Assembly (NCBI GenBank): GCA_002189035.1
Contig: NEEC01000489.1
Location: 1 to 30,863, forward strand
Length of the DNA: 30,863 nt
Origin: Utricularia gibba
Lineage: Eukaryota > Plantae > Magnoliophyta
Reading direction: 5' to 3'
Shown here: positions 1 to 30,863 of the stretch, piece after piece
Layout of the letters: each line of letters begins with the position of its first letter
Position numbering within the stretch: the first letter of the stretch is position 1
Position numbers and translations under genes: made by a program
Notes under the pieces: model-generated
What the model was told of the DNA's origin: nothing
Seen by the model: the letters and a program-made list of their open reading frames with translations, nothing else
Databases searched by the model: none

Positions 1-3000
1 ATCTGAAGGCTAATATAAGGCAATCTTTCGAGCATTTGTGCCTCCTCGGACGAACAAGTTCTCAACACGAAAGAAGACCGGCTCGGAACGAGCTTCGAAA
101 CGGTATGCTATGTGCAACATGACTCATCACATTTGCAAGATATCCACTCGATACCGAAGAGTGCACGAGGCCACCATGAGGTTGTGGCTAGGGACACACC
201 CATGGCATCTTAAATGATCATCTCGAAATCCAAATTTCACATCGTCCCATGAAATACATATGTCTTGCATGCCGAAAATCACATTCGCATCGAGTCGGGT
301 GTCCCGAGTCGCATCGTCGCGAACGTGGTGGCCACTTCGTTGCACATCTTAAGGCTAATATAAGGCAATCTTTCGAGCATTTGTGCCTCCTCGGACGAAC
401 AAGTTCTCAACACGAAAGAGACCGGCTCGGAACGAGCTTCGAAACGGTATGCTATGTGCAACATGACTCATCACCGTTTGCAAGATATCCACTCGATACC
501 GAAGAGTGCACGAGGCCACCATGAGGTTGTGGCTAGGGACACACCATGGCATCTTAAATGATCATCTCGAAATCCAAAATTTCACATCGTCCATGAAATA
601 CATATGTCTTGCATGCCGAAAATCACATTCGCATCGAGTCGGGTGTCCCGAGTCGCATCGTCGCGAACGTGGTGGCCACTTCGTTGCACATCTGAAGGCT
701 AATATAAGGCAATCTTTCGAGCATTTGTGCCTCCTCGACGAACAAGTTCTCAACACGAAAGAAGACCGGCTCGGAACGAGCTTCGAAACGGTATGCTATG
801 TGCAACATGACTCATCACCATTTGCAAGATATCCACTCGATACCGAAGAGTGCACGAGGCCACCATGAGGTTGTGGCTAGGGACACACCCATGGCATCTT
901 AAATGATCATCTCGAAATCCAAAAATTCACATCGTCCCATGAAATACATATGTCTTGCATGCCGAAAATCACATTCGCATCGAGTCGGGTGTCCCGAGTC
1001 GCATCGTCGCGAACGTGGTGGCCACTTCGTTGCACATCTTAAGGCTAATATAAGGCAATCTTTCGAGCATTTGTGCCTCCTCGGACGAACAAGTTCTCAA
1101 CACGAAAGAGACCGGCTCGGAACGAGCTTCGAAACGGTATGCTATGTGCAACATGACTCATCACCATTTGCAAGATATCCACTCGATACCGAAGAGTGCA
1201 CGAGGCCACCATGAGGTTGTGGCTAGGGACACACCATGGCATCTTAAATGATCATCTCGAAATCCAAAATTCACATCGTCCCATGAAATACATATGTCTT
1301 GCATGCAAAAATCACATTCGCATCGAGTCGGTGTCCCGAGTCGCATCGTCGCGAACGTGGTGGCCACTTCGTTGCACATCTGAAGGCTAATATAAGGCAA
1401 TCTTTCGAGCATTTGTGCCTCCTCGGACGAACAAGTTCTCAACACGAAAGAAGACCGGCTCGGAACGAGCTTCGAAACGGTATGCTATGTGCAACATGAC
1501 TCATCACCATTTGCAAGATATCCACTCGATACCGAAGAGTGCACGAGGCCACCATGAGGTTGTGGCTAGGGACACACCCATGGCATCTTAAATGATCATC
1601 TCGAAATCCAAATATTCACATCGTCCCATGAAATACATATGTCTTGCATGCCGAAAATCACATTCGCATCGAGTCGGGTGTCCCGAGTCGCATCGTCGCG
1701 AACGTGGTGGCCACTTCGTTGCACATCTGAAGGCTAATATAAGGCAATCTTTCGAGCATTTGTGCCTCTCGGACGAACAAGTTCTCAACACGAAAGAAAC
1801 GGCTCGGAACGAGCTTCGAAACGGTATGCTATGTGCAACATGACTCATCACCATTTGCAAGATATCCACTCGATACCGAAGAGTGCACGAGGCCACCATG
1901 AGGTTGTGGCTAGGGACACACCCATGGCATCTTAAATGATCATCTCGAAATCCAAAATTTTCACATCGTCCATGAAAATATGTCTTGCATGCCGAAAATC
2001 ACATTCGCATCGAGTCGGGTGTCCCGAGTCGCATCGTCGCGAACGTGGCCACTTCGTTGCACATCTAAGGCTAATATAAGGCAATCTTTCGAGCATTTGT
2101 GCCTCCTCGCGAACAAGTTCTCAACACGAAAGAGACCGGCTCGGAACGTATGTGCAACATGACTCATCACCGTTTGCAAGATATCCACTCGATACCGAAG
2201 AGTGCACGAGGCCACCATGAGGTTGTGGCTAGGGACACACCCATGGCATCTTAAATGATCATCTCGAAATCCAAAATTTCACATCGTCCCATGAAATACA
2301 TATGTCTTGCATGCCGAAAATCACATTCGCATCGAGTCGGGTGTCCCGAGTCGCATCGTCGCGAACGTGGTGGCCACTTCGTTGCACATCTGAAGGCTAA
2401 TATAAGGCAATCTTTCGAGCATTTGTGCCTCCTCGGACGAACAAGTTCTCAACACGAAAGAAGACCGGCTCGGAACGAGCTTCGAAACGGTATGCTATGT
2501 GCAACATGACTCATCACCGTTTGCAAGATATCCACTCGATACCGAAGAGTGCACGAGGCCACCATGAGGTTGTGGCTAGGGACACACCCATGGCATCTTA
2601 AATGATCATCTCGAAATAATTTCACATCGTCCCATGAAATACATATGTCTTGCATGCCGAAAATCACATTCGCATCGAGTCGGTGTCCCGAGTCGCATCG
2701 TCGCGAACGTGGTGGCCACTTCGTTGCACATCTGAAGGCTAATATAAGGCAATCTTTCGAGCATTTGTGCCTCCTCGGACGAACAAGTTCTCAACACGAA
2801 AGAAGACCGGCTCGGAACGAGCTTCGAAACGGTATGATATGCAACATGACTCATCACCATTTGCAAGATATCCACTCGATACCGAAGAGTGCACGAGGCC
2901 ACCATGAGGTTGTGGCTAGGGACACACCCATGGCATCTTAAATGATCATCTCGAAATCCAAATATTCACATCGTCCCATGAAATACATATGTCTTGCATG

Positions 3001-5648
3001 CCGAAAATCACATTCGCATCGAGTCGGGTGTCCCGAGTCGCATCGTCGCGAACGTGGTGGCCACTTCGTTGCACATCGGCTAATATAAGGCAATCTTTCG
3101 AGCATTTGTGCCTCCTCGGACGAACAAGTTCTCAACACGAAAGAAGACCGGCTCGGAACGAGCTTCGAAACGGTATGCTATGTGCAACATGACTCATCAC
3201 CGTTTGCAAGATATCCACTCGATACCGAAGAGTGCACGAGGCCACCATGAGGTTGTGGCTAGGGACACACCCATGGCATCTTAAATGATCATCTCGAAAT
3301 CCAAAATTCACATCGTCCCATGAAATACATATGTCTTGCATGCCGAAAATCACATTCGCATCGAGTCGGGTGTCCCGAGTCGCATCGTCGCGAACGTGTG
3401 GCCACTTCGTTGCACATCTTAAGGCTAATATAAGGCAATCTTTCGAGCATTTGTGCCTCCTCGGACGAACAAGTTCTCAACACGAAAGAAGACCGGCTCG
3501 GAACGAGCTTCGAAACGGTATGCTATGTGCAACATGACTCATCACCGTTTGCAAGATATCCACTCGATACCGAAGAGTGCACGAGGCCACCATGAGGTTG
3601 TGGCTAGGGACACACCCATGGCATCTTAAATGATCATCTCGAAATCCAAATATTCACATCGTCCCATGAAATACATATGTCTTGCATGCCGAAAATCACA
3701 TTCGCATCGAGTCGGGTGTCCCGAGTCGCATCGTCGCGAACGTGGTGGCCACTTCGTTGCACATCTGAAGGCTAATATAAGGCAATCTTTCGAGCATTTG
3801 TGCCTCCTCGGACGAACAAGTTCTCAACACGAAAGAAGACCGGCTCGGAACGAGCTTCGAAACGGTATGCTATGTGCAACATGACTCATCACCATTTGCA
3901 AGATATCCACTCGATACCGAAGAGTGCACGAGGCCACCATGAGGTTGTGGCTAGGGACACACCCATGCATCTTAAATGATCATCTCGAAATCCAAATATT
4001 CACATCGTCCCATGAAATACATATGTCTTGCATGCCGAAAATCACATTCGCATCGAGTCGGGTGTCCCGAGTCGCATCGTCGCGAACGTGTGGCCACTTC
4101 GTTGCACATCTGAAGGCTAATATAAGGCAATCTTTCGAGCATTTGTGCCCTCGGACGAACAAGTTCTCAACGAAAGAGACCGGCTCGGAACGCTCAACAT
4201 GACTCATCACCGTTTGCAAGATATCCACTCGATACCGAAGAGTGCACGAGGCCACCATGAGGTTGTGGCTAGGGACACACCCATGGCATCTTAAATGATC
4301 ATCTCGAAATCCAAATTTCACATCGTCCCATGAAATACATATGTCTTGCATGCCGAAAATCACATTCGCATCGAGTCGGGTGTCCCGAGTCGCATCGTCG
4401 CGAACGTGGTGGCCACTTCGTTGCACATCTGAAGGCTAATATAAGGCAATCTTTCGAGCATTTGTGCCTCCTCGGACGAACAAGTTCTCAACACGAAAGA
4501 AGACCGGCTCGGAACGAGCTTCGAAACGGTATGCTATGTGCAACATGACTCATCACCATTTGCAAGATATCCACTCGATACCGAAGAGTGCACGAGGCCA
4601 CCATGAGGTTGTGGCTAGGGACACACCCATGGCATCTTAAATGATCATCTCGAAATCCAAAATTCACATCGTCCCATGAAATACATATGTCTTGCATGCC
4701 GAAAATCACATTCGCATCGAGTCGGTGTCCCGAGTCGCATCGTCGCGAACGTGGTGGCCACTTCGTTGCACATCTGAAGGCTAATATAAGGCAATCTTTC
4801 GAGCATTTGTGCCTCCTCGGACGAACAAGTTCTCAACACGAAAGAGACCGGCTCGGATATGTGCAACATGACTCATCACCGTTTGCAAGATATCCACTCG
4901 ATACCGAAGAGTGCACGAGGCCACCATGAGGTTGTGGCTAGGGACACACCCATGGCATCTTAAATGATCATCTCGAAATCCAAATTCACATCGTCCCATG
5001 AAATACATATGTCTTGCATGCCGAAAATCACATTCGCATCGAGTCGGGTGTCCCGAGTCGCATCGTCGCGAACGTGGTGGCCACTTCGTTGCACATCTGA
5101 AGGCTAATATAAGGCAATCTTTCGAGCATTGTGCCTCCTCGGACGAACAAGTTCTCAACACGAAAGAAGACCGGCTCGGAACGAGCTTCGAAACGGTATG
5201 CTATGTGCAATGACTCATCACCATTTGCAAGATATCCACTCGATACCGAAGAGTGCACGAGGCCACCATGAGGTTGTGGCTAGGGACACACCCATGGCAT
5301 CTTAAATGATCATCTCGAAATCCAAATATTCACATCGTCCCATGAAATACATATGTCTTGCATGCCGAAAATCACATTCGCATCGAGTCGGGTGTCCCGA
5401 GTCGCATCGTCGCGAACGTGTGGCCACTTCGTTGCACATCTTAAGGCTAATATAAGGCAATCTTTCGAGCATTTGTGCCTCCTCGGACGAACAAGTTCTC
5501 AAACGAAAGAAGACCGGCTCGGAACGAGCTTCGAAACGGTATGCTATGTGCAACATGACTCATCACCGTTTGCAAGATATCCACTCGATACCGAAGAGTG
5601 CACGAGGCCACCATGAGGTTGTGGCTAGGGACACACCCATGGCATCTT

Positions 5649-5919
5649 AAATGATCATCTCGAAATCCAAATTTCACATCGTCCCATGAAATACATATGT
5701 CTTGCATGCCGAAAATCACATTCGCATCGAGTCGGGTGTCCCGAGTCGCATCGTCGCGAACGTGTGGCCACTTCGTTGCACATCTTAAGGCTAATATAAG
5801 GCAATCTTTCGAGCATTTGTGCCTCCTCGGACGAACAAGTTCTCAACACGAAAGGACCGGCTCGGAAAACATGGCGAAAACGAGTGCACATGACGTTGTG
5901 GACACACCCATGGCATCTT
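5649..5919 (+). repeat. Strongly shortened monomer U17 (271 bp)
   Basis: First ~205 bp match consensus; second half collapsed; GTTGTGG|ACACACC junction at 5895-5908. Partner is U61. Confidence 0.8.
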
Positions 5920-7633
5920 AAATGATCATCTCGAAATCCAAATATTCACATCGTCCCATGAAATACATATGTCTTGCATGCCGAAAATCACATTCGCATC
6001 GAGTCGGGTGTCCCGAGTCGCATCGTCGCGAACGTGTGGCCACTTCGTTGCACATCTTAAGGCTAATATAAGGCAATCTTTCGAGCATTTGTGCCTCCTC
6101 GGACGAACAAGTTCTCAACACGAAAAGACCGGCTCGGAACGAGCTTCGAAACGGTATGCTATGTGCAACATGACTCATCACCATTTGCAAGATATCCACT
6201 CGATACCGAAGAGTGCACGAGGCCACCATGAGGTTGTGGCTAGGGACACACCCATGGCATCTTAAATGATCATCTCGAAATCCAAATATTCACATCGTCC
6301 CATGAAATACATATGTCTTGCATGCCGAAAATCACATTCGCATCGAGTCGGGTGTCCCGAGTCGCATCGTCGCGAACGTGTGGCCACTTCGTTGCACATC
6401 TTAAGGCTAATATAAGGCAATCTTTCGAGCATTTGTGCCTCCTCGGACGAACAAGTTCTCAACACGAAAGAGACCGGCTCGGAACGAGCTTCGAAACGGT
6501 ATGCTATGTGCAACATGACTCATCACCATTTGCAAGATATCCACTCGATACCGAAGAGTGCACGAGGCCACCATGAGGTTGTGGCTAGGGACACACCCAT
6601 GGCATCTTAAATGATCATCTCGAAATCCAAATATTCACATCGTCCCATGAAATACATATGTCTTGCATGCCGAAAATCACATTCGCATCGAGTCGGGTGT
6701 CCCGAGTCGCATCGTCGCGAACGTGGTGGCCACTTCGTTGCACATCTGAAGGCTAATATAAGGCAATCTTTCGAGCATTTGTGCCTCCTCGGACTTCTCA
6801 ACACGAAAGAAGACCGGCTCGAACGAGCTTCGAAACGGTATGCTATGTGCAACATGACTCATCACCATTTGCAAGATATCCACTCGATACCGAAGAGTGC
6901 ACGAGGCCACCATGAGGTTGTGGCTAGGGACACACCCATGGCATCTTAAATGATCATCTCGAAATCCAAATTTTCACATCGTCCCATGAAATACATATGT
7001 CTTGCATGCAAAAATCACATTCGCATCGAGTCGGTGTCCCGAGTCGCATCGTCGCGAACGTGTGGCCACTTCGTTGCACATCTGAAGGCTAATATAAGGC
7101 AATCTTTCGAGCATTTGTGCCTCCTCGGACGAACAAGTTCTCAACAAAGAAGACCGGCTCGGAACGAGCTTCGAAACGGTATGATATGTGCAACATGACT
7201 CATCACCATTTGCAAGATATCCACTCGATACCGAAGAGTGCACGAGGCCACCATGAGGTTGTGGCTAGGGACACACCCATGGCATCTTAAATGATCATCT
7301 CGAAATCCAAATTTCACATCGTCCCATGAAATACATATGTCTTGCATGCCGAAAATCACATTCGCATCGAGTCGGGTGTCCCGAGTCGCATCGTCGCGAA
7401 CGTGTGGCCACTTCGTTGCACATCTTAAGGCTAATATAAGGCAATCTTTCGAGCATTTGTGCCTCCTCGGACGAACAAGTTCTCAACACGAAAGAAGACC
7501 GGCTCGGAACGAGCTTCGAAACGGTATGCTATGTGCAACATGACTCATCACCGTTTGCAAGATATCCACTCGATACCGAAGAGTGCACGAGCCCACCATG
7601 AGGTTGTGGCTAGGGACACACCCATGGCATCTT

Positions 7634-7928
7634 AAATGATCATCTCGAAATCCAAATTTCACATCGTCCATGAAATAATATGTCTTGCATGCCGAAAATC
7701 ACATTCGCATCGAGTCGGGTGTCCCGAGTCGCATCGTCGCGAACGTGTGGCCACTTCGTTGCACATCTTAAGGCTAATATAAGGCAATCTTTCGAGCATT
7801 TGTGCCTCCTCGACGAACAAGTTCTCAACACGAAAAAGAACGAGCTCGAACGCTATGTGCAACATGACTCATCACCATTTGCGCAAGAGTGCACGAGACC
7901 ATGGTTGTGGACACACCCATGGCATCTT
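7634..7928 (+). repeat. Strongly shortened monomer U23 (295 bp)
   Basis: Carries the GAACG|CTATG junction (7848-7857), loses the GATATC region, and has GTTGTGG|ACACACC (7904-7917). Partner is U67. Confidence 0.8.
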
Positions 7929-9655
7929 AAATGATCATCTCGAAATCCAAATATTCACATCGTCCCATGAAATACATATGTCTTGCATGCCGAAAATCAC
8001 ATTCGCATCGAGTCGGGTGTCCCGAGTCGCATCGTCGCGAACGTGTGGCCACTTCGTTGCACATCTTAAGGCTAATATAAGGCAATCTTTCGAGCATTTG
8101 TGCCTCCTCGGACGAACAAGTTCTCAACACGAAAGAAGACCGGCTCGGAACGAGCTTCGAAACGGTATGCTATGTGCAACATGACTCATCACCATTTGCA
8201 AGATATCCACTCGATACCGAAGAGTGCACGAGGCCACCATGAGGTTGTGGCTAGGGACACACCCATGGCATCTTAAATGATCATCTCGAAATCCAAATAT
8301 TCACATCGTCCCATGAAATACATATGTCTTGCATGCCGAAAATCACATTCGCATCGAGTCGGTGTCCCGAGTCGCATCGTCGCGAACGTGGTGGCCACTT
8401 CGTTGCACTTCTGAAGGCTAATATAAGGCAATCTTTCGAGCATTTGTGCCTCCTCGGACGAACAAGTTCTCAACACGAAAGAGACCGGCTCGGAACGAGC
8501 TTCGAAACGGTATGCTATGTGCAACATGACTCATCACCATTTGCAAGATATCCACTCGATACCGAAGAGTGCACGAGGCCACCATGAGGTTGTGGCTAGG
8601 GACACACCCATGGCATCTTAAATGATCATCTCGAAATCCAAATATTCACATCGTCCCATGAAATACATATGTCTTGCATGCCGAAAATCACATTCGCATC
8701 GAGTCGGGTGTCCCGAGTCGCATCGTCGCGAACGTGGTGGCCACTTCGTTGCACATCTGAAGGCTAATATAAGGCAATCTTTCGAGCATTTGTGCCTCCT
8801 CGGACGAACAAGTTCTCAACACGAAAGAAGACCGGCTCGGAACGAGCTTCGAAACGGTATGCTATGTGCAACATGACTCATCACCATTTGCAAGATATCC
8901 ACTCGATACCGAAGAGTGCACGAGGCCATGATGAGGTTGTGGCTAGGGACACACCCATGGCATCTTAAATGATCATCTCGAAATCCAAATTTCACATCGT
9001 CCCATGAAATAAATATGTCTTGCATGCAAAAATCACATTCGCATCGAGTCGGTGTCCCGAGTCGCATCGTCGCGAACGTGTGGCCACTTCGTTGCACATC
9101 TGAAGGCTAATATAAGGCAATCTTTCGAGCATTTGTGCCTCCTCGGACGAACAAGTTCTCAAAACGAAAAGAAGACCGGCTCGGAACGAGCTTCGAAACG
9201 GTATGCTATGTGCAACATGACTCATCACCATTTGCAAGATATCCACTCGATACCGAAGAGTGCACGAGGCACCATGAGGTTGTGGCTAGGGACACACCCA
9301 TGGCATCTTAAATGATCATCTCGAAATCCAAATATTCACATCGTCCCATGAAATACATATGTCTTGCATGCCGAAAATCACATTCGCATCGAGTCGGGTG
9401 TCCCGAGTCGCATCGTCGCGAACGTGTGGCCACTTCGTTGCACATCTTAAGGCTAATATAAGGCAATCTTTCGAGCATTTGTGCCTCCTCGGACGAACAA
9501 GTTCTCAACACGAAAGAAGACCGGCTCGGAACGAGCTTCGAAACGGTATGCTATGTGCAACATGACTCATCACCGTTTGCAAGATATCCACTCGATACCG
9601 AAGAGTGCACGAGGCCACCATGAGGTTGTGGCTAGGGACACACCCATGGCATCTT

Positions 9656-9917
9656 AAATGATCATCTCGAAATCCAAATTTCACATCGTCCCATGAAATA
9701 ATATGTCTTGCATGCCGAAAATCACATTCGCATCGAGTCGGGTGTCCCGAGTCGCATCGTCGCGAACGTGTGGCCACTTCGTTGCACATCTTAAGGCTAA
9801 TATAAGGCAATCTTTCGAGCATTTGTGCCTCCTCGGACGAACAAGTTCTCAACACGAAAGAGACTTAAACGCAATCTAGTGCACAGACCATGAGTTGTGG
9901 ACACACCATGGCATCTT
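9656..9917 (+). repeat. Strongly shortened monomer U29 (262 bp)
   Basis: Second half collapsed; GTTGTGG|ACACACC at 9894-9907. Partner is U73. Confidence 0.8.
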
Positions 9918-12900
9918 AAATGATCATCTCGAAATCCAAATATTCACATCGTCCCATGAAATACATATGTCTTGCATGCCGAAAATCACATTCGCATCGA
10001 GTCGGGTGTCCCGAGTCGCATCGTCGCGAACGTGTGGCCACTTCGTTGCACATCTTAAGGCTAATATAAGGCAATCTTTCGAGCATTTGTGCCTCCTCGG
10101 ACGAACAAGTTCTCAACACGAAAGAGACCGGCTCGGAACGAGCTTCGAAACGGTATGCTATGTGCAACATGACTCATCACCATTTGCAAGATATCCACTC
10201 GATACCGAAGAGTGCACGAGGCCACCATGAGGTTGTGGCTAGGGACACCCATGGCATCTTAAATGATCATCTCGAAATCCAAATATTCACATCGTCCCAT
10301 GAAATACATATGTCTTGCATGCCGAAAATCACATTCGCATCGAGTCGGTGTCCCGAGTCGCATCGTCGCGAACGTGGTGGCCACTTCGTTGCACATCTTA
10401 AGGCTAATATAAGGCAATCTTTCGAGCATTTGTGCCTCCTCGGACGAACAAGTTCTCAACACGAAAGAAGACCGGCTCGGAACGAGCTTCGAAACGGTAT
10501 GCTATGTGCAACATGACTCATCACCATTTGCAAGATATCCACTCGATACCGAAGAGTGCACGAGGCCACCATGAGGTTGTGGCTAGGGACACCCCATGGC
10601 ATCTTAAATGATCATCTCGAAATCCAAATATTCACATCGTCCCATGAAATACATATGTCTTGCATGCCGAAAATCACATTCGCATCGAGTCGGGTGTCCC
10701 GAGTCGCATCGTCGCGAACGTGGTGGCCACTTCGTTGCACATCTGAAGGCTAATATAAGGCAATCTTTCGAGCATTTGTGCCTCCTCGGACGAACAAGTT
10801 CTCAACACGAAAGAAGACCGGCTCGAACGAGCTTCGAAACGGTATGCTATGTGCAACATGACTCATCACCATTTGCAAGATATCCACTCGATACCGAAGA
10901 GTGCACGAGGCCACCATGAGGTTGTGGCTAGGGACACACCCATGGCATCTTAAATGATCATCTCGAAATCCAAATTTCACATCGTCCCATGAAATACATA
11001 TGTCTTGCATGCAAAAATCACATTCGCATCGAGTCGGGTGTCCCGAGTCGCATCGTCGCGAACGTGGTGGCCACTTCGTTGCACATCTGAAGGCTAATAT
11101 AAGGCAATCTTTCGAGCATTTGTGCCTCCTCGGACGAACAAGTTCTCAACACGAAAGAAGACCGGCTCGAACGCTTCGAAACGGTATGCTATGTGCAACA
11201 TGACTCATCACCATTTGCAAGATATCCACTCGATACCGAAGAGTGCACGAGGCCACCATGAGGTTGTGGCTAGGGACACACCCATGGCATCTTAAATGAT
11301 CATCTCGAAATCCAAATTTCACATCGTCCCATGAAATACATATGTCTTGCATGCCGAAAATCACATTCGCATCGAGTCGGGTGTCCCGAGTCGCATCGTC
11401 GCGAACGTGTGGCCACTTCGTTGCACATCTTAAGGCTAACAATCTTTCGAGCATTTGTGCCTCCTCTGCAAAAGACGGGTATCGGAACGAGCTTCGAAAC
11501 GGTATGCTATGTGCAACATGACTCATCACGTTTGCAAGATATCCACTCGATACCGAAGAGTGCACGAGGCCACCATGAGGTTGTGGCTAGGGACACACCC
11601 ATGGCATCTTAAATGATCATCTCGAAATCCAAATTTCACATCGTCCCATGAAATACATATGTCTTGCATGCCGAAAATCACATTCGCATCGAGTCGGGTG
11701 TCCCGAGTCGCATCGTCGCGAACGTGGTGGCCACTTCGTTGCACATCTGAAGGCTAATATAAGGCAATCTTTCGAGCATTTGTGCCTCCTCGGACGAACA
11801 AGTTCTCAACACGAAAGAAGACCGGCTCGAACGAGCTTCGAAACGGTATGCTATGTGCAACATGACTCATCACCATTTGCAAGATATCCACTCGATACCG
11901 AAGAGTGCACGAGGCCACCATGAGGTTGTGGCTAGGGACACACCCATGGCATCTTAAATGATATCTCGAAAAATTTCACATCGTCCCATGAAATACATAT
12001 GTCTTGCATGCGAAAATCACATTCGCATCGAGTCGGGTGTCCCGAGTCGCATCGTCGCGAACGTGTGGCCACTTCGTTGCACATCTTAAGGCTAATAAAG
12101 GCAATCTTTCGAGCATTTGTGCCTCCTCGGACGAACAAGTTCTCAACACGAAAGAGACCGGCTCGAACGCTATGTGCAACATGACTCATCACCGTTTGCA
12201 AGATATCCACTCGATACCGAAGAGTGCACGAGGCCACCATGAGGTTGTGGCTAGGGACACACCCATGGCATCTTAAATGATCATCTCGAAATCCAAATAT
12301 TCACATCGTCCCATGAAATACATATGTCTTGCATGCCGAAAATCACATTCGCATCGAGTCGGGTGTCCCGAGTCGCATCGTCGCGAACGTGTGGCCACTT
12401 CGTTGCACATCTTAAGGCTAATATAAGGCAATCTTTCGAGCATTTGTGCCTCCTCGGACGAACAAGTTCTCAACACGAAAGTAACCGGCTCGGAACGAGC
12501 TTCGAAACGGTATGCTATGTGCAACATGACTCATCACCATTTGCAAGATATCCACTCGATACCGAAGAGTGCACGAGGCCACCATGAGGGTTGTGGCTAG
12601 GGACACACCCATGGCATCTTAAATGATCATCTCGAAATCCAAATATTCACATCGTCCCATGAAATACATATGTCTTGCATGCCGAAAATCACATTCGCAT
12701 CGAGTCGGTGTCCCGAGTCGCATCGTCGCGAACGTGGTGGCCACTTCGTTGCACATCTGGGCTAATATAAGGCAATCTTTCGAGCATTTGTGCCTCCTCG
12801 GACGAACAAGTTCTCAACACGAAAGAAGACCGGCTCGGAACGAGCTTCGAAACGGTATGCTATGTGCAACATGACTCATCACCATTTGCAAGATATCCAC

Positions 12901-14291
12901 TCGATACCGAAGAGTGCACGAGGCCACCATGAGGTTGTGGCTAGGGACACACCCATGGCATCTTAAATGATCATCTCGAAATCCAAATATTCACATCGTC
13001 CCATGAAATACATATGTCTTGCATGCCGAAAATCACATTCGCATCGAGTCGGGTGTCCCGAGTCGCATCGTCGCGAACGTGGTGGCCACTTCGTTGCACA
13101 TCTGAAGGCTAATATAAGGCAATCTTTCGAGCATTTGTGCCTCCTCGGACGAACAAGTTCTCAACACGAAAGAAGACCGGCTCGAACGAGCTTCGAAACG
13201 GTATGCTATGTGCAACATGACTCATCACCATTTGCAAGATATCCACTCGATACCGAAGAGTGCACGAGGCCCACATGAGGTTGTGGCTAGGGACACACCC
13301 ATGGCATCTTAAATGATCATCTCGAAATCCAAATTTCACATCGTCCCATGAAATACATATGTCTTGCATGCGAAAATCACATTCGCATCGAGTCGGGTGT
13401 CCCGAGTCGCATCGTCCACTCGGCTAATTCTTTCGAGCAATGTTAACAAGCGAGCACACGAAAGAAAGAAGACGGCTCGGAACGAGCTTCGAAACGGTAT
13501 GATATGTGCAACATGACTCATCACCGTTTGCAAGATATCCACTCGATACCGAAGAGTGCACGAGGCCACCATGAGGTTGTGGCTAGGGACACACCATGGC
13601 ATCTTAAATGATCATCTCGAAATCCAAATTTCACATCGTCCCATGAAATACATATGTCTTGCATGCAAAAATCACATTCGCATCGAGTCGGGTGTCCCGA
13701 GTCGCATCGTCGCGAACGTGGTGGCCACTTCGTTGCACATCTGAAGGCTAATATAAGGCAATCTTTCGAGCATTTGTGCCTCCTCGGACGAACAAGTTCT
13801 CAACACGAAAGAAGACCGGCTCGAACGAGCTTCGAAACGGTATGCTATGTGCAACATGACTCATCACCATTTGCAAGATATCCACTCGATACCGAAGAGT
13901 GCACGAGGCCACCATGAGGTTGTGGCTAGGGACACACCATGGCATCTTAAATGATCATCTCGAAATCTGAAATTTCACATCGTCCATGAAATAATATGTC
14001 TTGCATGCCGAAAATCACATTCGCATCGAGTCGGTGTCCCGAGTCGCATCGTCGCGAACGTGGTGGCCACTTCGTTGCACATCTTAAGGCTAATATAAGG
14101 CAATCTTTCGAGCATTTGTGCCTCCTCGGACGAACAAGTTCTCAACACGAAAGAAGACCGGCTCGAACGAGCTTCGAAACGGTATGCTATGTGCAACATG
14201 ACTCATCACCATTTGCAAGATATCCACTCGATACCGAAGAGTGCACGAGGCCACCATGAGGTTGTGGCTAGGGACACACCCATGGCATCTT

Positions 14292-14619
14292 AAATGATCA
14301 TCTCGAAATCCAAATATTCACATCGTCCCATGAAATACATATGTCTTGCATGCCGAAAATCACATTCGCATCGAGTCGGGTGTCCCGAGTCGCATCGTCG
14401 CGAACGTTGTGGCCACTTCGTTGCACATCTTAAGGCTAATATAAGGCAATCTTTCGAGCATTTGTGCCTCCTCGGACGAACAAGTTCTCAACACGAAAGA
14501 GACCGGCTCGGAACGCTATGTGCAACATGACTCATCACCGTTTGCAAGATATCCACTCGATACGAAGAGTGCACGAGGCCACCATGAGGTTGTGGCTAGG
14601 GACACACCCATGGCATCTT
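14292..14619 (+). repeat. Example deletion-type (Y) monomer U43, 328 bp, lacking AGCTTCGAAACGGTATG
   Basis: Junction GAACG|CTATG at 14511-14520; the same junction recurs in several other short monomers. Confidence 0.8.
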
Positions 14620-20425: not shown

Positions 20426-20688
20426 AAATGATCATCTCGAAATCCAAATTTCACATCGTCCCATGAAATACATATGTCTTGCATGCCGAAAATCACATTC
20501 GCATCGAGTCGGGTGTCCCGAGTCGCATCGTCGCGAACGTGTGGCCACTTCGTTGCACATCTTAAGGCTAATATAAGGCAATCTTTCGAGCATTTGTGCC
20601 TCCTCGGACGAACAAGTTCTCAACACGAAAGTTCGGAACGAACATGAGCGAAAAAGTGCACAGGTTGTGGACACACCCATGGCATCTT
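20426..20688 (+). repeat. Strongly shortened monomer U61 (263 bp)
   Basis: Same collapse pattern as U17; GTTGTGG|ACACACC starting at 20664. Confidence 0.8.
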
Positions 20689-22070
20689 AAATGATCATCT
20701 CGAAATCCAAATATTCACATCGTCCCATGAAATACATATGTCTTGCATGCCGAAAATCACATTCGCATCGAGTCGGGTGTCCCGAGTCGCATCGTCGCGA
20801 ACGTGTGGCCACTTCGTTGCACATCTGAAGGCTAATATAAGGCAATCTTTCGAGCATTTGTGCCTCCTCGGACGAACAAGTTCTCAACACGAAAAAAGAC
20901 CGGCTCGGAACGAGCTTCGAAACGGTATGCTATGTGCAACATGACTCATCACCATTTGCAAGATATCCACTCGATACCGAAGAGTGCACGAGGCCACCAT
21001 GAGGTTGTGGCTAGGGACACACCCATGGCATCTTAAATGATCATCTCGAAATCCAAAATATTCACATCGTCCCATGAAATACATATGTCTTGCATGCCGA
21101 AAATCACATTCGCATCGAGTCGGTGTCCCGAGTCGCATCGTCGCGAACGTGGTGGCCACTTCGTTGCACATCTTAAGGCTAATATAAGGCAATCTTTCGA
21201 GCATTTGTGCCTCCTCGGACGAACAAGTTCTCAACACGAAAGAGACCGGCTCGGAACGAGCTTCGAAACGGTATGCTATGTGCAACATGACTCATCACCA
21301 TTTGCAAGATATCCACTCGATACCGAAGAGTGCACGAGGCCACCATGAGGTTGTGGCTAGGGACACACCCATGGCATCTTAAATGATCATCTCGAAATCC
21401 AAATTTCACATCGTCCCATGAAATACATATGTCTTGCATGCCGAAAATCACATTCGCATCGAGTCGGGTGTCCCGAGTCGCATCGTCGCGAACGTGGTGG
21501 CCACTTCGTTGCACATCTGAAGGCTAATATAAGGCAATCTTTCGAGCATTTGTGCCTCCTCGGACGAACAAGTTCTCAACACGAAAGAAGACCGGCTCGG
21601 AACGAGCTTCGAAACGGTATGCTATGTGCAACATGACTCATCACCATTTGCAAGATATCCACTCGATACCGAAGAGTGCACGAGGCCACCATGAGGTTGT
21701 GGCTAGGGACACACCCATGGCATCTTAAATGATCATCTCGAAATCCAAATTTCACATCGTCCCATGAAATACATATGTCTTGCATGCCGAAAATCACATT
21801 CGCATCGAGTCGGTGTCCCGAGTCGCATCGTCGCGAACGTGTGGCCACTTCGTTGCACATCTGAAGGCTAATATAAGGCAATCTTTCGAGCATTTGTGCC
21901 TCCTCGGACGAACAAGTTCTCAACACGAAAGAAGACCGGCTCGGAACGAGCTTCGAAACGGTATGCTATGTGCAACATGACTCATCACCATTTGCAAGAT
22001 ATCCACTCGATACCGAAGAGTGCACGAGGCCACCATGAGGTTGTGGCTAGGGACACACCCATGGCATCTT

Positions 22071-22417
22071 AAATGATCATCTCGAAATCCAAATATTCAC
22101 ATCGTCCCATGAAATACATATGTCTTGCATGCCGAAAATCACATTCGCATCGAGTCGGGTGTCCCGAGTCGCATCGTCGCGAACGTGGTGGCCACTTCGT
22201 TGCACATCTTAAGGCTAATATAAGGCAATCTTTCGAGCATTTGTGCCTCCTCGGACGAACAAGTTCTCAACACGAAAGAAGACCGGCTCGGAACGAGCTT
22301 CGAAACGGTATGCTATGTGCAACATGACTCATCACCATTTGCAAGATATCCACTCGATACCGAAGAGTGCACGAGGCCACCATGAGGTTGTGGCTAGGGA
22401 CACACCCATGGCATCTT
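22071..22417 (+). repeat. Reference full-length monomer U66 (347 bp; consensus except T at the G/T site, unit position 140)
   Basis: Runs AAATGATCATCTCGAAATCCAAATATTCAC...GGGACACACCCATGGCATCTT. Hand count on the consensus: 169/347 G+C and 25 CpG. Used as the coordinate reference: window position = 22070 + unit position. Confidence 0.93.
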
Positions 22418-22718
22418 AAATGATCATCTCGAAATCCAAATTTCACATCGTCCCATGAAATACATATGTCTTGCATGCCGAAAATCATTCGCATCGAGTC
22501 GGGTGTCCCGAGTCGCATCGTCGCGAACGTGGTGGCCACTTCGTTGCACATCTTAAGGCTAATATAAGGCAATCTTTCGAGCATTTGTGCCTCCTCGGAC
22601 GAACAAGTTCTCAACACGAAAGAGACCGGCTCGGAACGCTATGTGCAACATGACTCATCACCGTTTGCGAAAAGAGTGCACGAGGCCATGAGTTGTGGCT
22701 ACACACCCATGGCATCTT
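22418..22718 (+). repeat. Strongly shortened monomer U67 (301 bp)
   Basis: GAACG|CTATG at 22634-22643; reads TTTGCGAAAAGAGTGC in place of the GATATC region, similar to U23. Confidence 0.8.
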
Positions 22719-24434
22719 AAATGATCATCTCGAAATCCAAATATTCACATCGTCCCATGAAATACATATGTCTTGCATGCCGAAAATCACATTCGCATCG
22801 AGTCGGGTGTCCCGAGTCGCATCGTCGCGAACGTGGTGGCCACTTCGTTGCACATCTGAAGGCTAATATAAGGCAATCTTTCGAGCATTTGTGCCTCCTC
22901 GGACGAACAAGTTCTCAACACGAAAGAGACCGGCTCGGAACGAGCTTCGAAACGGTATGCTATGTGCAACATGACTCATCACCATTTGCAAGATATCCAC
23001 TCGATACCGAAGAGTGCACGAGGCCACCATGAGGTTGTGGCTAGGGACACACCCATGGCATCTTAAATGATCATCTCGAAATCCAAATATTCACATCGTC
23101 CCATGAAATACATATGTCTTGCATGCCGAAAATCACATTCGCATCGAGTCGGTGTCCCGAGTCGCATCGTCGCGAACGTGGTGGCCACTTCGTTGCACAT
23201 CTGAAGGCTAATATAAGGCAATCTTTCGAGCATTTGTGCCTCCGGACGAACAAGTTCTCAACACGAAAGAGACCGGCTCGGAACGAGCTTCGAAACGGTA
23301 TGCTATGTGCAACATGACTCATCACCATTTGCAAGATATCCACTCGATACCGAAGAGTGCACGAGGCCACCATGAGGTTGTGGCTAGGGACACACCCATG
23401 GCATCTTAAATGATCATCTCGAAATCCAAATTTCACATCGTCCCATGAAATACATATGTCTTGCATGCCGAAAATCACATTCGCATCGAGTCGGGTGTCC
23501 CGAGTCGCATCGTCGCGAACGTGGTGGCCACTTCGTTGCACATCTGAAGGCTAATATAAGGCAATCTTTCGAGCATTTGTGCCTCCTCGGACGAACAAGT
23601 TCTCAACACGAAAGAAGACCGGCTCGGAACGAGCTTCGAAACGGTATGCTATGTGCAACATGACTCATCACCATTTGCAAGATATCCACTCGATACCGAA
23701 GAGTGCACGAGGCCACCATGAGGTTGTGGCTAGGGACACACCCATGGCATCTTAAATGATCATCTCGAAATCCAAATTTCACATCGTCCCATGAAATACA
23801 TATGTCTTGCATGCAAAAATCACATTCGCATCGAGTCGGTGTCCCGAGTCGCATCGTCGCGAACGTGTGGCCACTTCGTTGCACATCTAAGGCTAATATA
23901 AGGCAATCTTTCGAGCATTTGTGCCTCCTCGGACGAACAAGTTCTCAAACGAAAGGGCTCGGAACGAGCTTCGAAACGGTATGCTATGTGCAACATGACT
24001 CATCACCATTTGCAAGATATCCACTCGATACCGAAGAGTGCACGAGGCCACCATGAGGTTGTGGCTAGGGACACACCCATGGCATCTTAAATGATCATCT
24101 CGAAATCCAAATATTCACATCGTCCCATGAAATACATATGTCTTGCATGCCGAAAATCACATTCGCATCGAGTCGGGTGTCCCGAGTCGCATCGTCGCGA
24201 ACGTGTGGCCACTTCGTTGCACATCTTAAGGCTAATATAAGGCAATCTTTCGAGCATTTGTGCCTCCTCGGACGAACAAGTTCTCAACACGAAAGAAGAC
24301 CGGCTCGGAACGAGCTTCGAAACGGTATGATATGTGCAACATGACTCATCACCGTTTGCAAGATATCCACTCGATACCGAAGAGTGCACGAGGCCACCAT
24401 GAGGTTGTGGCTAGGGACACACCCATGGCATCTT

Positions 24435-24728
24435 AAATGATCATCTCGAAATCCAAATTTCACATCGTCCCATGAAATACATATGTCTTGCATGCCGAAA
24501 ATCACATTCGCATCGAGTCGGGTGTCCCGAGTCGCATCGTCGCGAACGTGGTGGCCACTTCGTTGCACATCTTAAGGCTAATATAAGGCAATCTTTCGAG
24601 CATTTGTGCCTCCTCGGACGAACAAGTTCTCAACACGAAAGAGACCAAACGCTATGTGCAACATGACTCATGTTTGCAATCGAAGAGTGCACGAGGCCCA
24701 TGAGTTGTGGACACACCCATGGCATCTT
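24435..24728 (+). repeat. Strongly shortened monomer U73 (294 bp)
   Basis: AACG|CTATG at 24648-24656; GTTGTGG|ACACACC starting at 24704. Confidence 0.8.
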
Positions 24729-27700
24729 AAATGATCATCTCGAAATCCAAATATTCACATCGTCCCATGAAATACATATGTCTTGCATGCCGAAAATCAC
24801 ATTCGCATCGAGTCGGTGTCCCGAGTCGCATCGTCGCGAACGTGTGGCCACTTCGTTGCACATCTGAAGGCTAATATAAGGCAATCTTTCGAGCATTTGT
24901 GCCTCCTCGGACGAACAAGTTCTCAACACGAAAGAAGACCGGCTCGGAACGAGCTTCGAAACGGTATGCTATGTGCAACATGACTCATCACCATTTGCAA
25001 GATATCCACTCGATACCGAAGAGTGCACGAGGCCACCATGAGGTTGTGGCTAGGGACACACCCATGCATCTTAAATGATCATCTCGAAATCCAAATATTC
25101 ACATCGTCCCATGAAATACATATGTCTTGCATGCCGAAAATCACATTCGCATCGAGTCGGGTCCCGAGTCGCATCGTCGCGAACGTGGTGGCCACTTCGT
25201 TGCACATCTTAAGGCTAATATAAGGCAATCTTTCGAGCATTTGTGCCTCCTCGGACGAACAAGTTCTCAACACGAAAGAGACCGGCTCGGAACGAGCTTC
25301 GAAACGGTATGCTATGTGCAACATGACTCATCACCATTTGCAAGATATCCACTCGATACCGAAGAGTGCACGAGGCCACCATGAGGTTGTGGCTAGGGAC
25401 ACACCCATGGCATCTTAAATGATCATCTCGAAATCCAAATATTCACATCGTCCCATGAAATACATATGTCTTGCATGCCGAAAATCACATTCGCATCGAG
25501 TCGGGTGTCCCGAGTCGCATCGTCGCGAACGTGGTGGCCACTTCGTTGCACATCTGAAGGCTAATATAAGGCAATCTTTCGAGCATTTGTGCCTCCTCGG
25601 ACGAACAAGTTCTCAACACGAAAGAAGACCGGCTCGGAACGAGCTTCGAAACGGTATGCTATGTGCAACATGACTCATCACCATTTGCAAAGATATCCAC
25701 TCGATACCGAAGAGTGCACGAGGCCACCATGAGGTTGTGGCTAGGGACACACCCATGGCATCTTAAATGATCATCTCGAAATCCAAATTTTCACATCGTC
25801 CCATGAAATACATATGTCTTGCATGCCGAAAATCACATTCGCATCGAGTCGGGTGTCCCGAGTCGCATCGTCGCGAACGTGGTGGCCACTTCGTTGCACA
25901 TCTGAAGGCTAATATAAGGCAATCTTTCGAGCATTTGTGCCTCCTCGGACGAACAAGTTCTCAACACGAAAGAAGACCGGCTCGGAACGAGCTTCGAAAC
26001 GGTATGCTATGTGCAACATGACTCATCACCATTTGCAAGATATCCACTCGATACCGAAGAGTGCACGAGGCCACCATGAGGTTGTGGCTAGGGACACACC
26101 ATGGCATCTTAAATGATCATCTCGAAATCCAAATTTCACATCGTCCCATGAAATACATATGTCTTGCATGCCGAAAATCACATTCGCATCGAGTCGGGTG
26201 TCCCGAGTCGCATCGTCGCGAACGTGGTGGCCACTTCGTTGCACATCTCTAATATAAGGCAATCTTCGAGCATTTGTGCATGCAAAAAGACGTGTCTCGG
26301 AACGAGCTTCGAAACGGTATGCTATGTGCAACATGACTCATCACCGTTTGCAAGATATCCACTCGATACCGAAGAGTGCACGAGGCCACCATGAGGTTGT
26401 GGCTAGGGACACACCCATGGCATCTTAAATGATCATCTCGAAATCCAAATTTCACATCGTCCCATGAAATACATATGTCTTGCATGCCGAAAAATCACAT
26501 TCGCATCGAGTCGGGTGTCCCGAGTCGCATCGTCGCGAACGTGGTGGCCACTTCGTTGCACATCTGAAGGCTAATATAAGGCAATCTTTCGAGCATTTGT
26601 GCCTCCTCGGACGAACAAGTTCTCAACACGAAAGAAGACCGGCTCGGAACGAGCTTCGAAACGGTATGCTATGTGCAACATGACTCATCACCATTTGCAA
26701 GATATCCACTCGATACCGAAGAGTGCACGAGGCCACCATGAGGTTGTGGCTAGGGACACACCCATGGCATCTTAAATGATCATCTCGAAATCCAAATTTC
26801 ACATCGTCCCATGAAATACATATGTCTTGCATGCCGAAAATCACATTCGCATCGAGTCGGGTGTCCCGAGTCGCATCGTCGCGAACGTGGTGGCCACTTC
26901 GTTGCACATCTTAAGGCTAATATAAGGCAATCTTTCGAGCATTTGTGCCTCCTCGGACGAACAAGTTCTCAACACGAAAGAGACCGGCTCGGAGTATGTA
27001 TGCAACATGACTCATCACCATTTGCAAGATATCCACTCGATACCGAAGAGTGCACGAGGCCACCATGAGGTTGTGGCTAGGGACACACCCATGGCATCTT
27101 AAATGATCATCTCGAAATCCAAATATTCACATCGTCCCATGAAATACATATGTCTTGCATGCCGAAAATCACATTCGCATCGAGTCGGGTGTCCCGAGTC
27201 GCATCGTCGCGAACGTGTGGCCACTTCGTTGCACATCTGAAGGCTAATATAAGGCAATCTTTCGAGCATTTGTGCCTCTCGGACGAACAAGTTCTCAACA
27301 CGAAAGAGACCGGCTCGGAACGAGCTTCGAAACGGTATGCTATGTGCAACATGACTCATCACCATTTGCAAGATATCCACTCGATACCGAAGAGTGCACG
27401 AGGCCACCATGAGGTTGTGGCTAGGGACACACCCATGGCATCTTAAATGATCATCTCGAAATCCAAAATTTCACATCGTCCCATGAAATACATATGTCTT
27501 GCATGCCGAAAATCACATTCGCATCGAGTCGGTGTCCCGAGTCGCATCGTCGCGAACGTGGTGGCCACTTCGTTGCACATCTGAAGGCTAATATAAGGCA
27601 ATCTTTCGAGCATTTGTGCCTCCTCGGACGAACAAGTTCTCAACACGAAAGAAGACCGGCTCGGAACGAGCTTCGAAACGGTATGCTATGTGCAACATGA

Positions 27701-30700
27701 CTCATCACCATTTGCAAGATATCCACTCGATACCGAAGAGTGCACGAGGCCACCATGAGGTTGTGGCTAGGGACACACCCATGGCATCTTAAATGATCAT
27801 CTCGAAATCCAATATTCACATCGTCCCATGAAATACATATGTCTTGCATGCCGAAAATCACATTCGCATCGAGTCGGGTGTCCCGAGTCGCATCGTCGCG
27901 AACGTGGTGGCCACTTCGTTGCACATCTGAAGGCTAATATAAGGCAATCTTTCGAGCATTTGTGCCTCCTCGGACGAACAAGTTCTCAACACGAAAGAAG
28001 ACCGGCTCGGAACGAGCTTCGAAACGGTATGCTATGTGCAACATGACTCATCACCATTTGCAAGATATCCACTCGATACCGAAGAGTGCACGAGGCCACC
28101 ATGAGGTTGTGGCTAGGGACACACCCATGGCATCTTAAATGATCATCTCGAAATCCAAATTTTCACATCGTCCCATGAAATACATATGTCTTGCATGCGA
28201 AAATCACATTCGCATCGAGTCGGGTGTCCCGAGTCGCATCGTCGCGAACGTGGTGGCCACTTCGTTGGGCTAATATAAGGCAATCTTTCGAGCATTTGTG
28301 CCTCCTCTGCAAAAGGTACATGAACCGGCTCGGAACGAGCTTCGAAACGGTATGCTATGTGCAACATGACTCATCACCGTTTGCAATATCCACTCGATAC
28401 CGAAGAGTGCACGAGGCCACCATGAGGTTGTGGCTAGGGACACACCCATGGCATCTTAAATGATCATCTCGAAATCCAAATTTCACATCGTCCCATGAAA
28501 TACATATGTCTTGCATGCCGAAAATCACATTCGCATCGAGTCGGTGTCCCGAGTCGCATCGTCGCGAACGTGGTGGCCACTTCGTTGCACATCTGAAGGC
28601 TAATATAAGGCAATCTTTCGAGCATTTGTGCCTCCTCGGACGAACAAGTTCTCAACACGAAAGAAGACCGGCTCGGAACGAGCTTCGAAACGGTATGCTA
28701 TGTGCAACATGACTCATCACCATTTGCAAGATATCCACTCGATACCGAAGAGTGCACGAGGCCACCATGAGGTTGTGGCTAGGGACACACCCATGGCATC
28801 TTAAATGATCATCTCGAAATCCAAATTTCACATCGTCCCATGAAATACATATGTCTTGCATGCCGAAAATCACATTCGCATCGAGTCGGTGTCCCGAGTC
28901 GCATCGTCGCGAACGTGGTGGCCACTTCGTTGCACATCTGAAGGCTAATATAAGGCAATCTTTCGAGCATTTGTGCCCTCGGACGAACAAGTTCTCAACA
29001 CGAAAGAAGACCGGCTCGGAACGAGCTTCGAAACGGTATGCTATGTGCAACATGACTCATCACCATTTGCAAGATATCCACTCGATACCGAAGAGTGCAC
29101 GAGGCCACCATGAGGTTGTGGCTAGGGACACACCCATGGCATCTTAAATGATCATCTCGAAATCCAAATTTCACATCGTCCCATGAAATACATATGTCTT
29201 GCATGCCGAAAATCACATTCGCATCGAGTCGGGTGTCCCGAGTCGCATCGTCGCGAACGTGTGGCCACTTCGTTGCACATCTTAAGCTAATATAAGGCAA
29301 TCTTTCGAGCATTTGTGCCTCCTCGGACGAACAAGTTCTCAACACGAAAGAGACCGGCTCGGAACGCTAATGTGCAACATGACTCATCACCGTTTGCAAG
29401 ATATCCACTCGATACCGAAGAGTGCACGAGGCCACCATGAGGTTGTGGCTAGGGACACACCCATGGCATCTTAAATGATCATCTCGAAATCCAAATATTC
29501 ACATCGTCCCATGAAATACATATGTCTTGCATGCCGAAAATCACATTCGCATCGAGTCGGGTGTCCCGAGTCGCATCGTCGAACGTGTGGCCACTTCGTT
29601 GCACATCTTAAGGCTAATATAAGGCAATCTTTCGAGCATTTGTGCCTCCTCGGACGAACAAGTTCTCAACACGAAAGAGACCGGCTCGGAACGAGCTTCG
29701 AAACGGTATGCTATGTGCAACATGACTCATCACCATTTGCAAGATATCCACTCGATACCGAAGAGTGCACGAGGCCACCATGAGGTTGTGGCTAGGGACA
29801 CACCATGGCATCTTAAATGATCATCTCGAAATCCAAATTTCACATCGTCCCATGAAATACATATGTCTTGCATGCCGAAAATCACATTCGCATCGAGTCG
29901 GTGTCCCGAGTCGCATCGTCGCGAACGTGGTGGCCACTTCGTTGCACATCTGAAGGCTAATATAAGGCAATCTTTCGAGCATTTGTGCCTCCTCGGACGA
30001 ACAAGTTCTCAACACGAAAGAGACCGGCTCGGAACGAGCTTCGAAACGGTATGCTATGTGCAACATGACTCATCACCATTTGCAAGATATCCACTCGATA
30101 CCGAAGAGTGCACGAGGCCACCATGAGGTTGTGGCTAGGGACACACCCATGGCATCTTAAATGATCATCTCGAAATCCAAAATTCACATCGTCCCATGAA
30201 ATACATATGTCTTGCATGCCGAAAATCACATTCGCATCGAGTCGGGTGTCCCGAGTCGCATCGTCGCGAACGTGGTGGCCACTTCGTTGCACATCTGAAG
30301 GCTAATATAAGGCAATCTTTCGAGCATTTGTGCCTCCTCGGACGAACAAGTTCTCAACACGAAAGAAGAACTCGGAACGAGCTTCGAAACGGTATGATAT
30401 GTGCAACATGACTCATCACCATTTGCAAGATATCCACTCGATACCGAAGAGTGCACGAGGCCACCATGAGGTTGTGGCTAGGGACACACCCATGGCATCT
30501 TAAATGATCATCTCGAAATCTGAAATTTCACATCGTCCCATGAAATAAATATGTCTTGCATGTCAAAAATCACATTCGCATCGAGTCGGGTGTCCCGAGT
30601 CGCATCGTCGCGAACGTGGTGGCCACTTCGTTGCACATCTGAAGGCTAATATAAGGCAATCTTTCGAGCATTTGTGCCTCCTCGGACGAACAAGTTCTCA

Positions 30701-30863
30701 ACACGAAAGAAGACCGGCTCGAACGAGCTTCGAAACGGTATGCTATGTGCAACATGACTCATCACCATTTGCAAGATATCCACTCGATACCGAAGAGTGC
30801 ACGAGGCCACCATGAGGTTGTGGCTAGGGACACACCCATGGCATCTTAAATGATCATCTCGAA

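Follow-up and report, generated by a model that had tools for sequence, protein, structure and literature searches.

Satellite arrays expand, and acquire periods of several monomers, by the standard route of out-of-register exchange or template switching, and the segmental duplications that unequal crossing-over generates are seen as large off-diagonal blocks in complete assemblies of centromeres and satellites. Models of unequal crossing-over within satellite arrays have been summarised (PMC7004042; PMC8122249), and higher-order repeats (HORs) have been reported in plant satellites, FabTR-2 of Lathyrus sativus being one example (PMC7004042). The array described here occupies the whole of a 30,863-bp stretch of Utricularia gibba DNA, referred to as the window. 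Its organisation is probably the result of a genuine tandem duplication within a satellite array, fairly recent in origin, that left 44 consecutive monomers (~14.8 kb) in two or more adjacent, collinear copies.

The satellite has a unit of ~346 bp and fills the window (1..30863) uninterrupted, with a period of 343–346 bp throughout according to TRF and a GC content of 0.48 that is flat along its length. Cutting at a conserved 19-mer used as anchor yields 91 whole monomers, indexed here from 0 (monomer 5 is U6 of an earlier, sequence-only reading of this DNA), and one partial monomer at each end, and the array extends past both window ends. As in HORs, the TRF output and the 91 anchored monomers describe a single family arranged head to tail. 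The 30,863 bp contain no Ns or other joins, and neither TRF nor the GC profile reveals non-satellite sequence inside the window. No Rfam family matches the window even with permissive thresholds, so the monomer is not a detectable derivative of 5S rDNA or of a ribozyme. A coding role of the array was rejected, as the ORF scan gave merely short, frame-shifting ORFs, none of them longer than 156 aa. Six 17–20-mers of the monomer found no match in a full-text literature search, word searches being likewise empty, and a 26-mer found none in a metagenome scan.

The block structure is revealed by the lengths of the monomers. Exactly 20 of the 91 are 328 bp or shorter, all the remaining ones being at least 335 bp, and the ten short monomers of the second half of the window have the indices of the ten in the first half plus 44 in every case, just as the sequence-only reading had noticed. 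At this lag, 10 pairs are short in both halves, 37 are full-length in both and neither kind of mixed pair occurs (Fisher p = 1.9e-10), while the runner-up lag reaches p = 0.004. The offset between lag-44 partners is 14,752–14,854 bp throughout (14,756–14,854 bp in the sequence-only reading). With the phase set, arbitrarily, at the first short monomer, copy 1 of the period consists of monomers 5–48 (1928..16685; 44 monomers, 14,758 bp), and the anchor split and lag-44 pairing assign monomers 49–90 (16686..30841) to copy 2, that is, 42 of its 44 monomers, the rest being cut off by the window end. The two copies are adjacent, collinear and on the same strand, with no spacer between them, as in a tandem duplication within an array.

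The short monomers carry internal deletions that fall into three lesion classes, and the partners agree in class as well as in position. The first three pairs are of class A or A-like: monomer 5 (1928..2246, 319 bp, with a ~17-bp deletion) and 49 (16686..17011, 326 bp), the A-like monomers 11 (3968..4286, 319 bp) and 55 (18730..19053, 324 bp), and monomers 13 (4633..4955, 323 bp) and 57 (19399..19726, 328 bp). Three pairs of class B follow: monomers 16 (5643..5913, 271 bp) and 60 (20420..20682, 263 bp), to which a deletion of ~40 bp is restricted, monomers 22 (7628..7922, 295 bp) and 66 (22412..22712, 301 bp), and monomers 28 (9650..9911, 262 bp) and 72 (24429..24722, 294 bp, hence 32 bp longer). 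Class C is represented by monomers 33 (11288..11604, 317 bp) and 77 (26105..26420, 316 bp), in which a ~20-bp deletion is accompanied by a private cluster of changes, and, in a variant form, by monomers 39 (13305..13599, 295 bp, with an extra deletion at columns 140–163) and 83 (28131..28451, 321 bp, 26 bp longer). Between these two pairs lie the class A monomers 35 (11950..12268, 319 bp) and 79 (26768..27094, 327 bp), and the series ends with monomers 42 (14286..14613, 328 bp), whose class A deletion of 17 bp is clean, and 86 (29140..29466, 327 bp). The resulting order, A, A, A, B, B, B, C, A, C, A, is identical in both halves and is one of 2,520 possible orders, so that the ten short monomers and their classes document at lag 44 the ordered recurrence of a monomer block that is also known from HORs. 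Moreover, the lesion signatures of 16/60, 28/72, 33/77 and 39/83 are private to each pair; monomers 16 and 60 are mutual nearest neighbours, and 72 is nearest to 28.

The full-length monomers contain the same signal in a weaker form. Monomers 44 apart differ on average in 10.8 alignment columns, against ~25 at other lags, and when the full-length monomers alone are considered lag 44 is better than all of 5,000 shuffles, which is the peak that the sequence-only reading had predicted for a permutation test. Three variants that it had scored were also recovered. The GGG>GG change is matched at lag 44 in 8 of its 10 first-half carriers, and at the G/T site 34 of the 42 pairs that can be scored agree, both exactly as counted before; five second-half carriers of GGG>GG have no partner. 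For AAATATT versus other forms, 33 of 47 pairs agree in the present alignment, the earlier count being 35. Lag-44 partners are significantly closer than other pairs, but by a small margin (3.97 events per monomer versus 5.39). At common polymorphic sites only about half of the correlation is retained between copies, which speaks against a recent duplication, as it would require that gene conversion was extensive or that reads were heavily mixed in the consensus.

A shorter period of 6–7 monomers is nested inside the 44-monomer block. The profile of column differences by lag has a trough at lag 6, and both lag 6 (0 of 5,000 shuffles) and lag 7 (1 of 5,000) reach significance. The clearest case in copy 1, delimited by type strings and lag tests, consists of three 6-monomer units (monomers 16–21, 22–27 and 28–33; 5643..11604), each of which opens with a multiply deleted class B monomer and continues with an identical series of monomer types. 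As the mismatch is lowered at lags 6, 7, 13 and 57 too, it could be argued that the lag-44 signal is a matter of chance or a by-product of the 6–7-monomer periodicity, and that the two halves are unrelated. This reading has practically no probability: it is refuted by the Fisher test on the short monomers and by shuffles within sub-block positions, none of which, out of 10,000, matched the observed lag-44 value, and the pair-specific lesion signatures also speak against it. Among full-length monomers, the mean number of mismatches at key sites is 2.22 for lag-44 partners, 3.25 for monomers sharing a sub-block position and 3.85 for other positions.

Most of the fine differences between the copies look like sequencing or consensus noise, a conclusion drawn from the excess of indels, the deletion bias of unshared rare variants and the restoration of a missing base by short reads. 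Copy 1 and copy 2 are separated by 178 indel events and 71 substitutions (a ratio of 2.5:1), and the rare variants of full-length monomers comprise 38 deletions, ~8 insertions and 20 substitutions, with nine transitions to 11 transversions. The string TGCATGCAAAAATC is present in eight monomers of the window, a T being missing in 8 of the 9 monomers of that variant type. In four public short-read runs from three studies, each covering one or more of four sites, unitigs give TGCATGTCAAAAATC, with the T restored, at all four TGCATGCAAAAATC monomers compared, and monomer 90 of the window itself carries TGCATGTCAAAAATC. These unitigs are 55–136 bp long and each fits many monomers, so that depth per monomer has no meaning and they do not resolve the period, the junction or the lesion borders. 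The contig has recurrent deletion errors, which make fine-scale variant analysis of the satellite in this assembly unreliable, and a caution in this respect is the main practical value of the present results.

This noise gives weight to the possibility of an assembly artefact, an alternative named in the sequence-only reading, in which the block is single at the locus and was placed twice in tandem by the assembler, either by joining reads over a spurious overlap within the six plain monomers that separate the short-monomer blocks or by chaining two versions of the block, haplotypic or paralogous. The window, contig-sized and entirely satellite, holds almost exactly two periods, and its sequence is demonstrably noisy, as the indel excess and the short-read contradictions indicate. 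The large lesions private to the source block (16/60, 28/72, 33/77 and 39/83) occur in both copies, but rare point variants do not and rare exact words hardly do: none of the variants carried by exactly two full-length monomers lies at lag 44, and only three of the 272 31-mers found exactly two times link lag-44 partners, when an accurately assembled recent duplication would yield hundreds of such links. Such copies, which share no rare point variant and almost no rare exact word, and whose paired lesions agree in place and differ in their exact borders, are what one template rendered twice, independently and with noise, would look like. When rare exact words are counted by offset no 14.8-kb peak is seen either, but this approach was discarded as blind to the period, since most rare 31-mers are isolated noise (of the 3,907 distinct 31-mers, 2,798 occur a single time).

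A few of the differences between the copies, however, look real. Monomer 51 has the linked set C53A, TCA, GGG>GG, GG>G and C208A, which is also that of monomers 26 and 70, and its partner, monomer 7, lacks the set, so that the whole monomer has switched type; the two-base TCA variant is retained in two of six lag-44 pairs and lost in the other four. The sequence-only reading had ascribed the fine differences to noise over a duplicated template, which holds for most of them and fails for the 7/51 switch and for TCA. Copies of a single template would differ solely by consensus noise, and coherent divergence of the kind seen in monomers 7 and 51 argues against a template read twice, although chained haplotypes would allow both the switch and the TCA losses. 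Furthermore, when read sets overlap fully an assembler will normally collapse them and not duplicate them, a false join would have just ~2 kb of plain monomers to form in, and the window is free of Ns or other joins. An artefact is on these grounds considered unlikely, and a real duplication remains the preferred explanation.

It has also been considered that the 44-monomer block could be an established HOR, that is, a 14.8-kb homogenisation unit with many copies beyond the window, whose differences would be largely real and due to conversion between monomers. The rise in similarity from different positions to the same sub-block position to the lag-44 partner is consistent with such a unit, as is the persistence of the lag-44 signal up to the window's right end, where monomers 44 and 88 are nearest neighbours and 46 and 90 share the rare TCA type. 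The left end behaves differently. Monomers 0–3 differ from 44–47 by 6, 5, 8 and 7 events, the background for random pairs being 5.4, and being no closer than random pairs they leave a third copy to the left unsupported. The three pairs available at lag 88 differ by 4, 6 and 10 events, so that the members of a pair are not alike; a circular or over-run contig, in which start and end would match at lag 88, was rejected because the ends are dissimilar. A leftward third copy at lag 43 was rejected as well: two of four pairs fit, but the partial monomer at the start appears full-length, as judged by reading the sequence directly and not by measurement, and monomer 42 is short. In addition, the spectrum of differences between the copies is that of noise and not of mutation.

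An established HOR is therefore regarded as quite unlikely, and it is similarly doubtful that a three-tier HOR of monomer, 6–7-mer and 44-mer continues for many copies in the 346-bp satellite of this plant. The sequence-only reading had proposed a higher-order repeat or a recent duplication. Two adjacent, collinear copies of 44 monomers were indeed found, but the term higher-order period, which implies a repeatedly homogenised unit, is not supported as stated, because just 2.07 periods are visible in the window and monomers 0–3 are unlike their partners. To our knowledge, a period of 44 monomers and 14.8 kb is long relative to known plant HOR examples, and if a many-copy HOR did exist here it would have one of the longest periods described for plants, with internally deleted monomers as its markers.

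The model we prefer, a recent tandem duplication, proposes that the duplicated block was already composed of an older 6–7-monomer sub-repeat, and that it was probably copied by unequal crossing-over between sister chromatids or homologues, or by a template switch during replication, between monomers 44 units apart. An error-prone long-read assembly would then have introduced consensus errors biased towards deletions and most severe near the deleted monomers, which would explain most of the small differences, and the minority would be real post-duplication changes of the gene-conversion type. If both copies are real, the locus provides a small and clean example of layered array growth by the duplication of blocks that already hold shorter periods, and the deleted monomers would serve as long-range markers in assembly checks of the satellite.

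When compared with known systems, the array shares with the HORs of human alpha-satellite and of plant FabTR-2 the head-to-tail arrangement of a single family, the ordered recurrence of a block and nested periods, here the monomer, the 6–7-mer and the 44-mer. It differs from them in that two copies only are seen, in that the identity between copies is barely above that between monomers (~98.9% versus ~98.4% by events per monomer), and in that the main markers of the period are deleted monomers and not diverged monomer types. False tandem duplications in long-read assemblies likewise occupy small, repeat-only contigs with about two periods, a high consensus error and mostly indel differences, but some of the differences between the copies described here are coherent over several sites, beyond what noise produces. 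Intra-array segmental duplications have the same adjacent, collinear, multi-kilobase copies in the same orientation and with no spacer, and no essential difference from them was found. As judged from the sequence, this category would be the best fit, and the two-copy block is an ordinary kind of duplication within satellite arrays.

The window is filled from end to end (all 30,863 bp) by a single unbroken array of tandemly repeated ~346-bp satellite monomers, along which the GC content stays flat at 0.48. An ORF scan of the array found nothing longer than about 150 aa, and an Rfam scan of the monomer gave zero matches, even with E values up to 10. Six 17-20-mers from the monomer were absent from all searchable papers in a full-text search, and one 26-mer was absent from JGI metagenome contigs. 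Splitting of the array at a conserved 19-mer yielded 91 whole monomers (numbered 0-90), which were then aligned; 20 of them measure 262-328 bp and the remainder 335-348 bp.

The short monomers are 5, 11, 13, 16, 22, 28, 33, 35, 39 and 42, plus each of these numbers increased by 44, which reproduces exactly the list on which the sequence-only reading had based a 44-monomer (~14.8 kb) higher-order period. Partners at this lag lie 14,752-14,854 bp apart, and the 2x2 table for shortness is 10/0/0/37 (Fisher p = 1.9e-10), the runner-up lag reaching p = 0.004. The peak predicted at lag 44 is present: mean column differences as a function of lag show one deep trough, at 44 (10.8 vs about 25), and, for full-length monomers only, with mismatch counted at 16 recurrent sites, the lag-44 value falls below all 5,000 shuffles and also below all 10,000 shuffles that preserve place in a nested sub-repeat. 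The individual sites cited earlier were recounted with the same outcome for GGG>GG (a lag-44 match in 8 of the 10 first-half carriers) and for the G/T site (agreement in 34 of 42 pairs), and, for AAATATT, the present alignment gives agreement in 33 of 47 pairs, where 35 had been given. The lag-44 relation is confirmed, and chance, which the Fisher and shuffle tests exceed by far, can be dismissed as its source.

Three lesion classes can be distinguished among the short monomers: a ~17-bp deletion (class A), multiple deletions within the final third of the monomer (class B), and a ~20-bp deletion plus clustered changes (class C). The order of these classes is identical in both halves, one of 2,520 possible orders, and the pairs 16/60, 28/72, 33/77 and 39/83 carry signatures that are common to both partners and absent from every other monomer. 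The class-A deletion, seen in 14286-14613, in 29140-29466 and in other class-A monomers, changes GGAACGAGCTTCGAAACGGTATGCTATG to GGAACGCTATG. On visual inspection, it is flanked by a pair of similar short motifs, GAACG and GAAACGG, which would suggest slippage as its origin.

The 44-monomer block is itself composed of units of 6-7 monomers, the clearest being monomers 16-21, 22-27 and 28-33 (window 5643-11604), each of which starts with a class-B monomer followed by the same series of monomer types. Mismatch is also lowered at lags 6, 7, 13 and 57 (= 44+13), and lags 6 and 7 are both significant (0 and 1 of 5,000 shuffles, respectively). This sub-repeat is cleaner in copy 1 (monomers 5-48, 1928-16685) than in copy 2 (monomers 49-90, 16686-30841), and key-site mismatches decrease from 3.85 for different sub-block positions to 3.25 for the same position and 2.22 for lag-44 partners.

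Only 2.07 periods are visible in the window. Compared with monomers 44-47, monomers 0-3 show 6, 5, 8 and 7 events where the background is 5.4, so that they are no closer than random pairs, and none of the three pairs compared at lag 88 is alike; nothing therefore points to a third copy on the left. An established multi-copy 44-mer HOR would agree with the persistence of the relation to the right end of the window, where the pair 44/88 consists of nearest neighbours and both members of the pair 46/90 are of the rare TCA type, but the unlike monomers on the left and at lag 88 make it quite improbable. The 2.07 periods and the unlike monomers on the left therefore indicate two adjacent copies, and of the long higher-order repeat or recent duplication first proposed, the array-wide period is not borne out. 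The structure is probably a real tandem duplication of two (or more) copies, viewed through a noisy assembly.

The noise is directly evident at one motif. Eight monomers, all of one variant type, read TGCATGCAAAAATC, with a T missing (1300, 7003, 9021, 11006, 13660, 15711, 17418 and 23808), and a ninth, monomer 90, reads TGCATGTCAAAAATC, with the T present (30557). The public runs found consist of short-read unitigs of 55-136 bp, which fit many monomers; they insert the T in all four TGCATGCAAAAATC monomers compared (at 7008, 9026, 11011 and 23813), and each of the four runs, which come from three studies, has it in at least one of these monomers. The T-less form is an error of the assembly, a 1-nt deletion that recurs at this motif. 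The recurrent variants GGG>GG, GG>G and CCC>CC likewise lack one nucleotide of a G/C run. Comparison of the 47 pairs gives 178 indel events between the copies, 127 of them single-base, and 71 substitutions; full-length partners show 3.97 events per monomer vs 5.39 in random full-length pairs, a gain in identity that is real but small. Rare variants of full-length monomers comprise 38 deletions (20 of 2-7 bp), about 8 insertions and 20 substitutions, with transitions and transversions at 9:11, a spectrum typical of long-read consensus error and unlike mutation in methylated plant DNA. None of the variants present in exactly two full-length monomers is at lag 44, and only 3 of the 272 31-mers occurring exactly twice join lag-44 partners. 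Despite the 91-copy array, 2,798 of 3,907 distinct 31-mers are seen only once, and the best public run contains only 0.31 of sampled words of the window, both of which are compatible with many one-off errors in the contig. Paired short monomers are about twice as different as paired full ones (5-18 events), and the borders of the class-A deletion shift between monomers, as expected if the consensus was built from noisy, partly mis-registered reads. For the rare differences, the variant spectrum, the missing T and the shifting borders thus give good support to the earlier idea of noise over a duplicated template, and the fine-scale variation of this contig should not be trusted.

The same idea fails for differences that are coherent. 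Monomer 51 (17358-17698) has five linked marks (C53A, TCA, GGG>GG, GG>G and C208A) in common with monomers 26 (8961-9303) and 70, whereas its partner, monomer 7 (2594-2933), has just one of them. The two-base TCA variant is retained in just 2 of 6 pairs, and the two copies disagree at the G/T site in 8 of 42, seven of these pairing a T of copy 1 with a G of copy 2. Random error of ~0.3% per base cannot produce these three patterns, which reflect either genuine conversion-like change that postdates the duplication or consensus mixing of reads from different monomers; for monomer 51, the type switch would stem either from a mis-tiled read or from conversion or replacement of the whole monomer since the duplication. 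Such differences also bear on a false duplication by the assembler, which a small, purely repetitive and noisy contig of nearly two periods would allow: they argue against a single template read twice, while leaving room for the chaining of two haplotype or paralogous versions, and an assembly artefact is possible, although unlikely. In the reads there is an abundant second satellite form that is absent from the window. At 22437 and 26130, behind AAATCC, ~40% of the depth of run X1 reads AAATCCG..., and unitigs of this run terminate in CTCGAAATCCG, with loose ends at 5669, 10972 and 11314.

The favoured tandem segmental duplication could have arisen by out-of-register recombination or template switching, as judged from the standard models of satellite evolution (summarised in PMC7004042). 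Structures of this kind are well known in satellite arrays, including those of plants (PMC7004042), and the present instance is new but ordinary.
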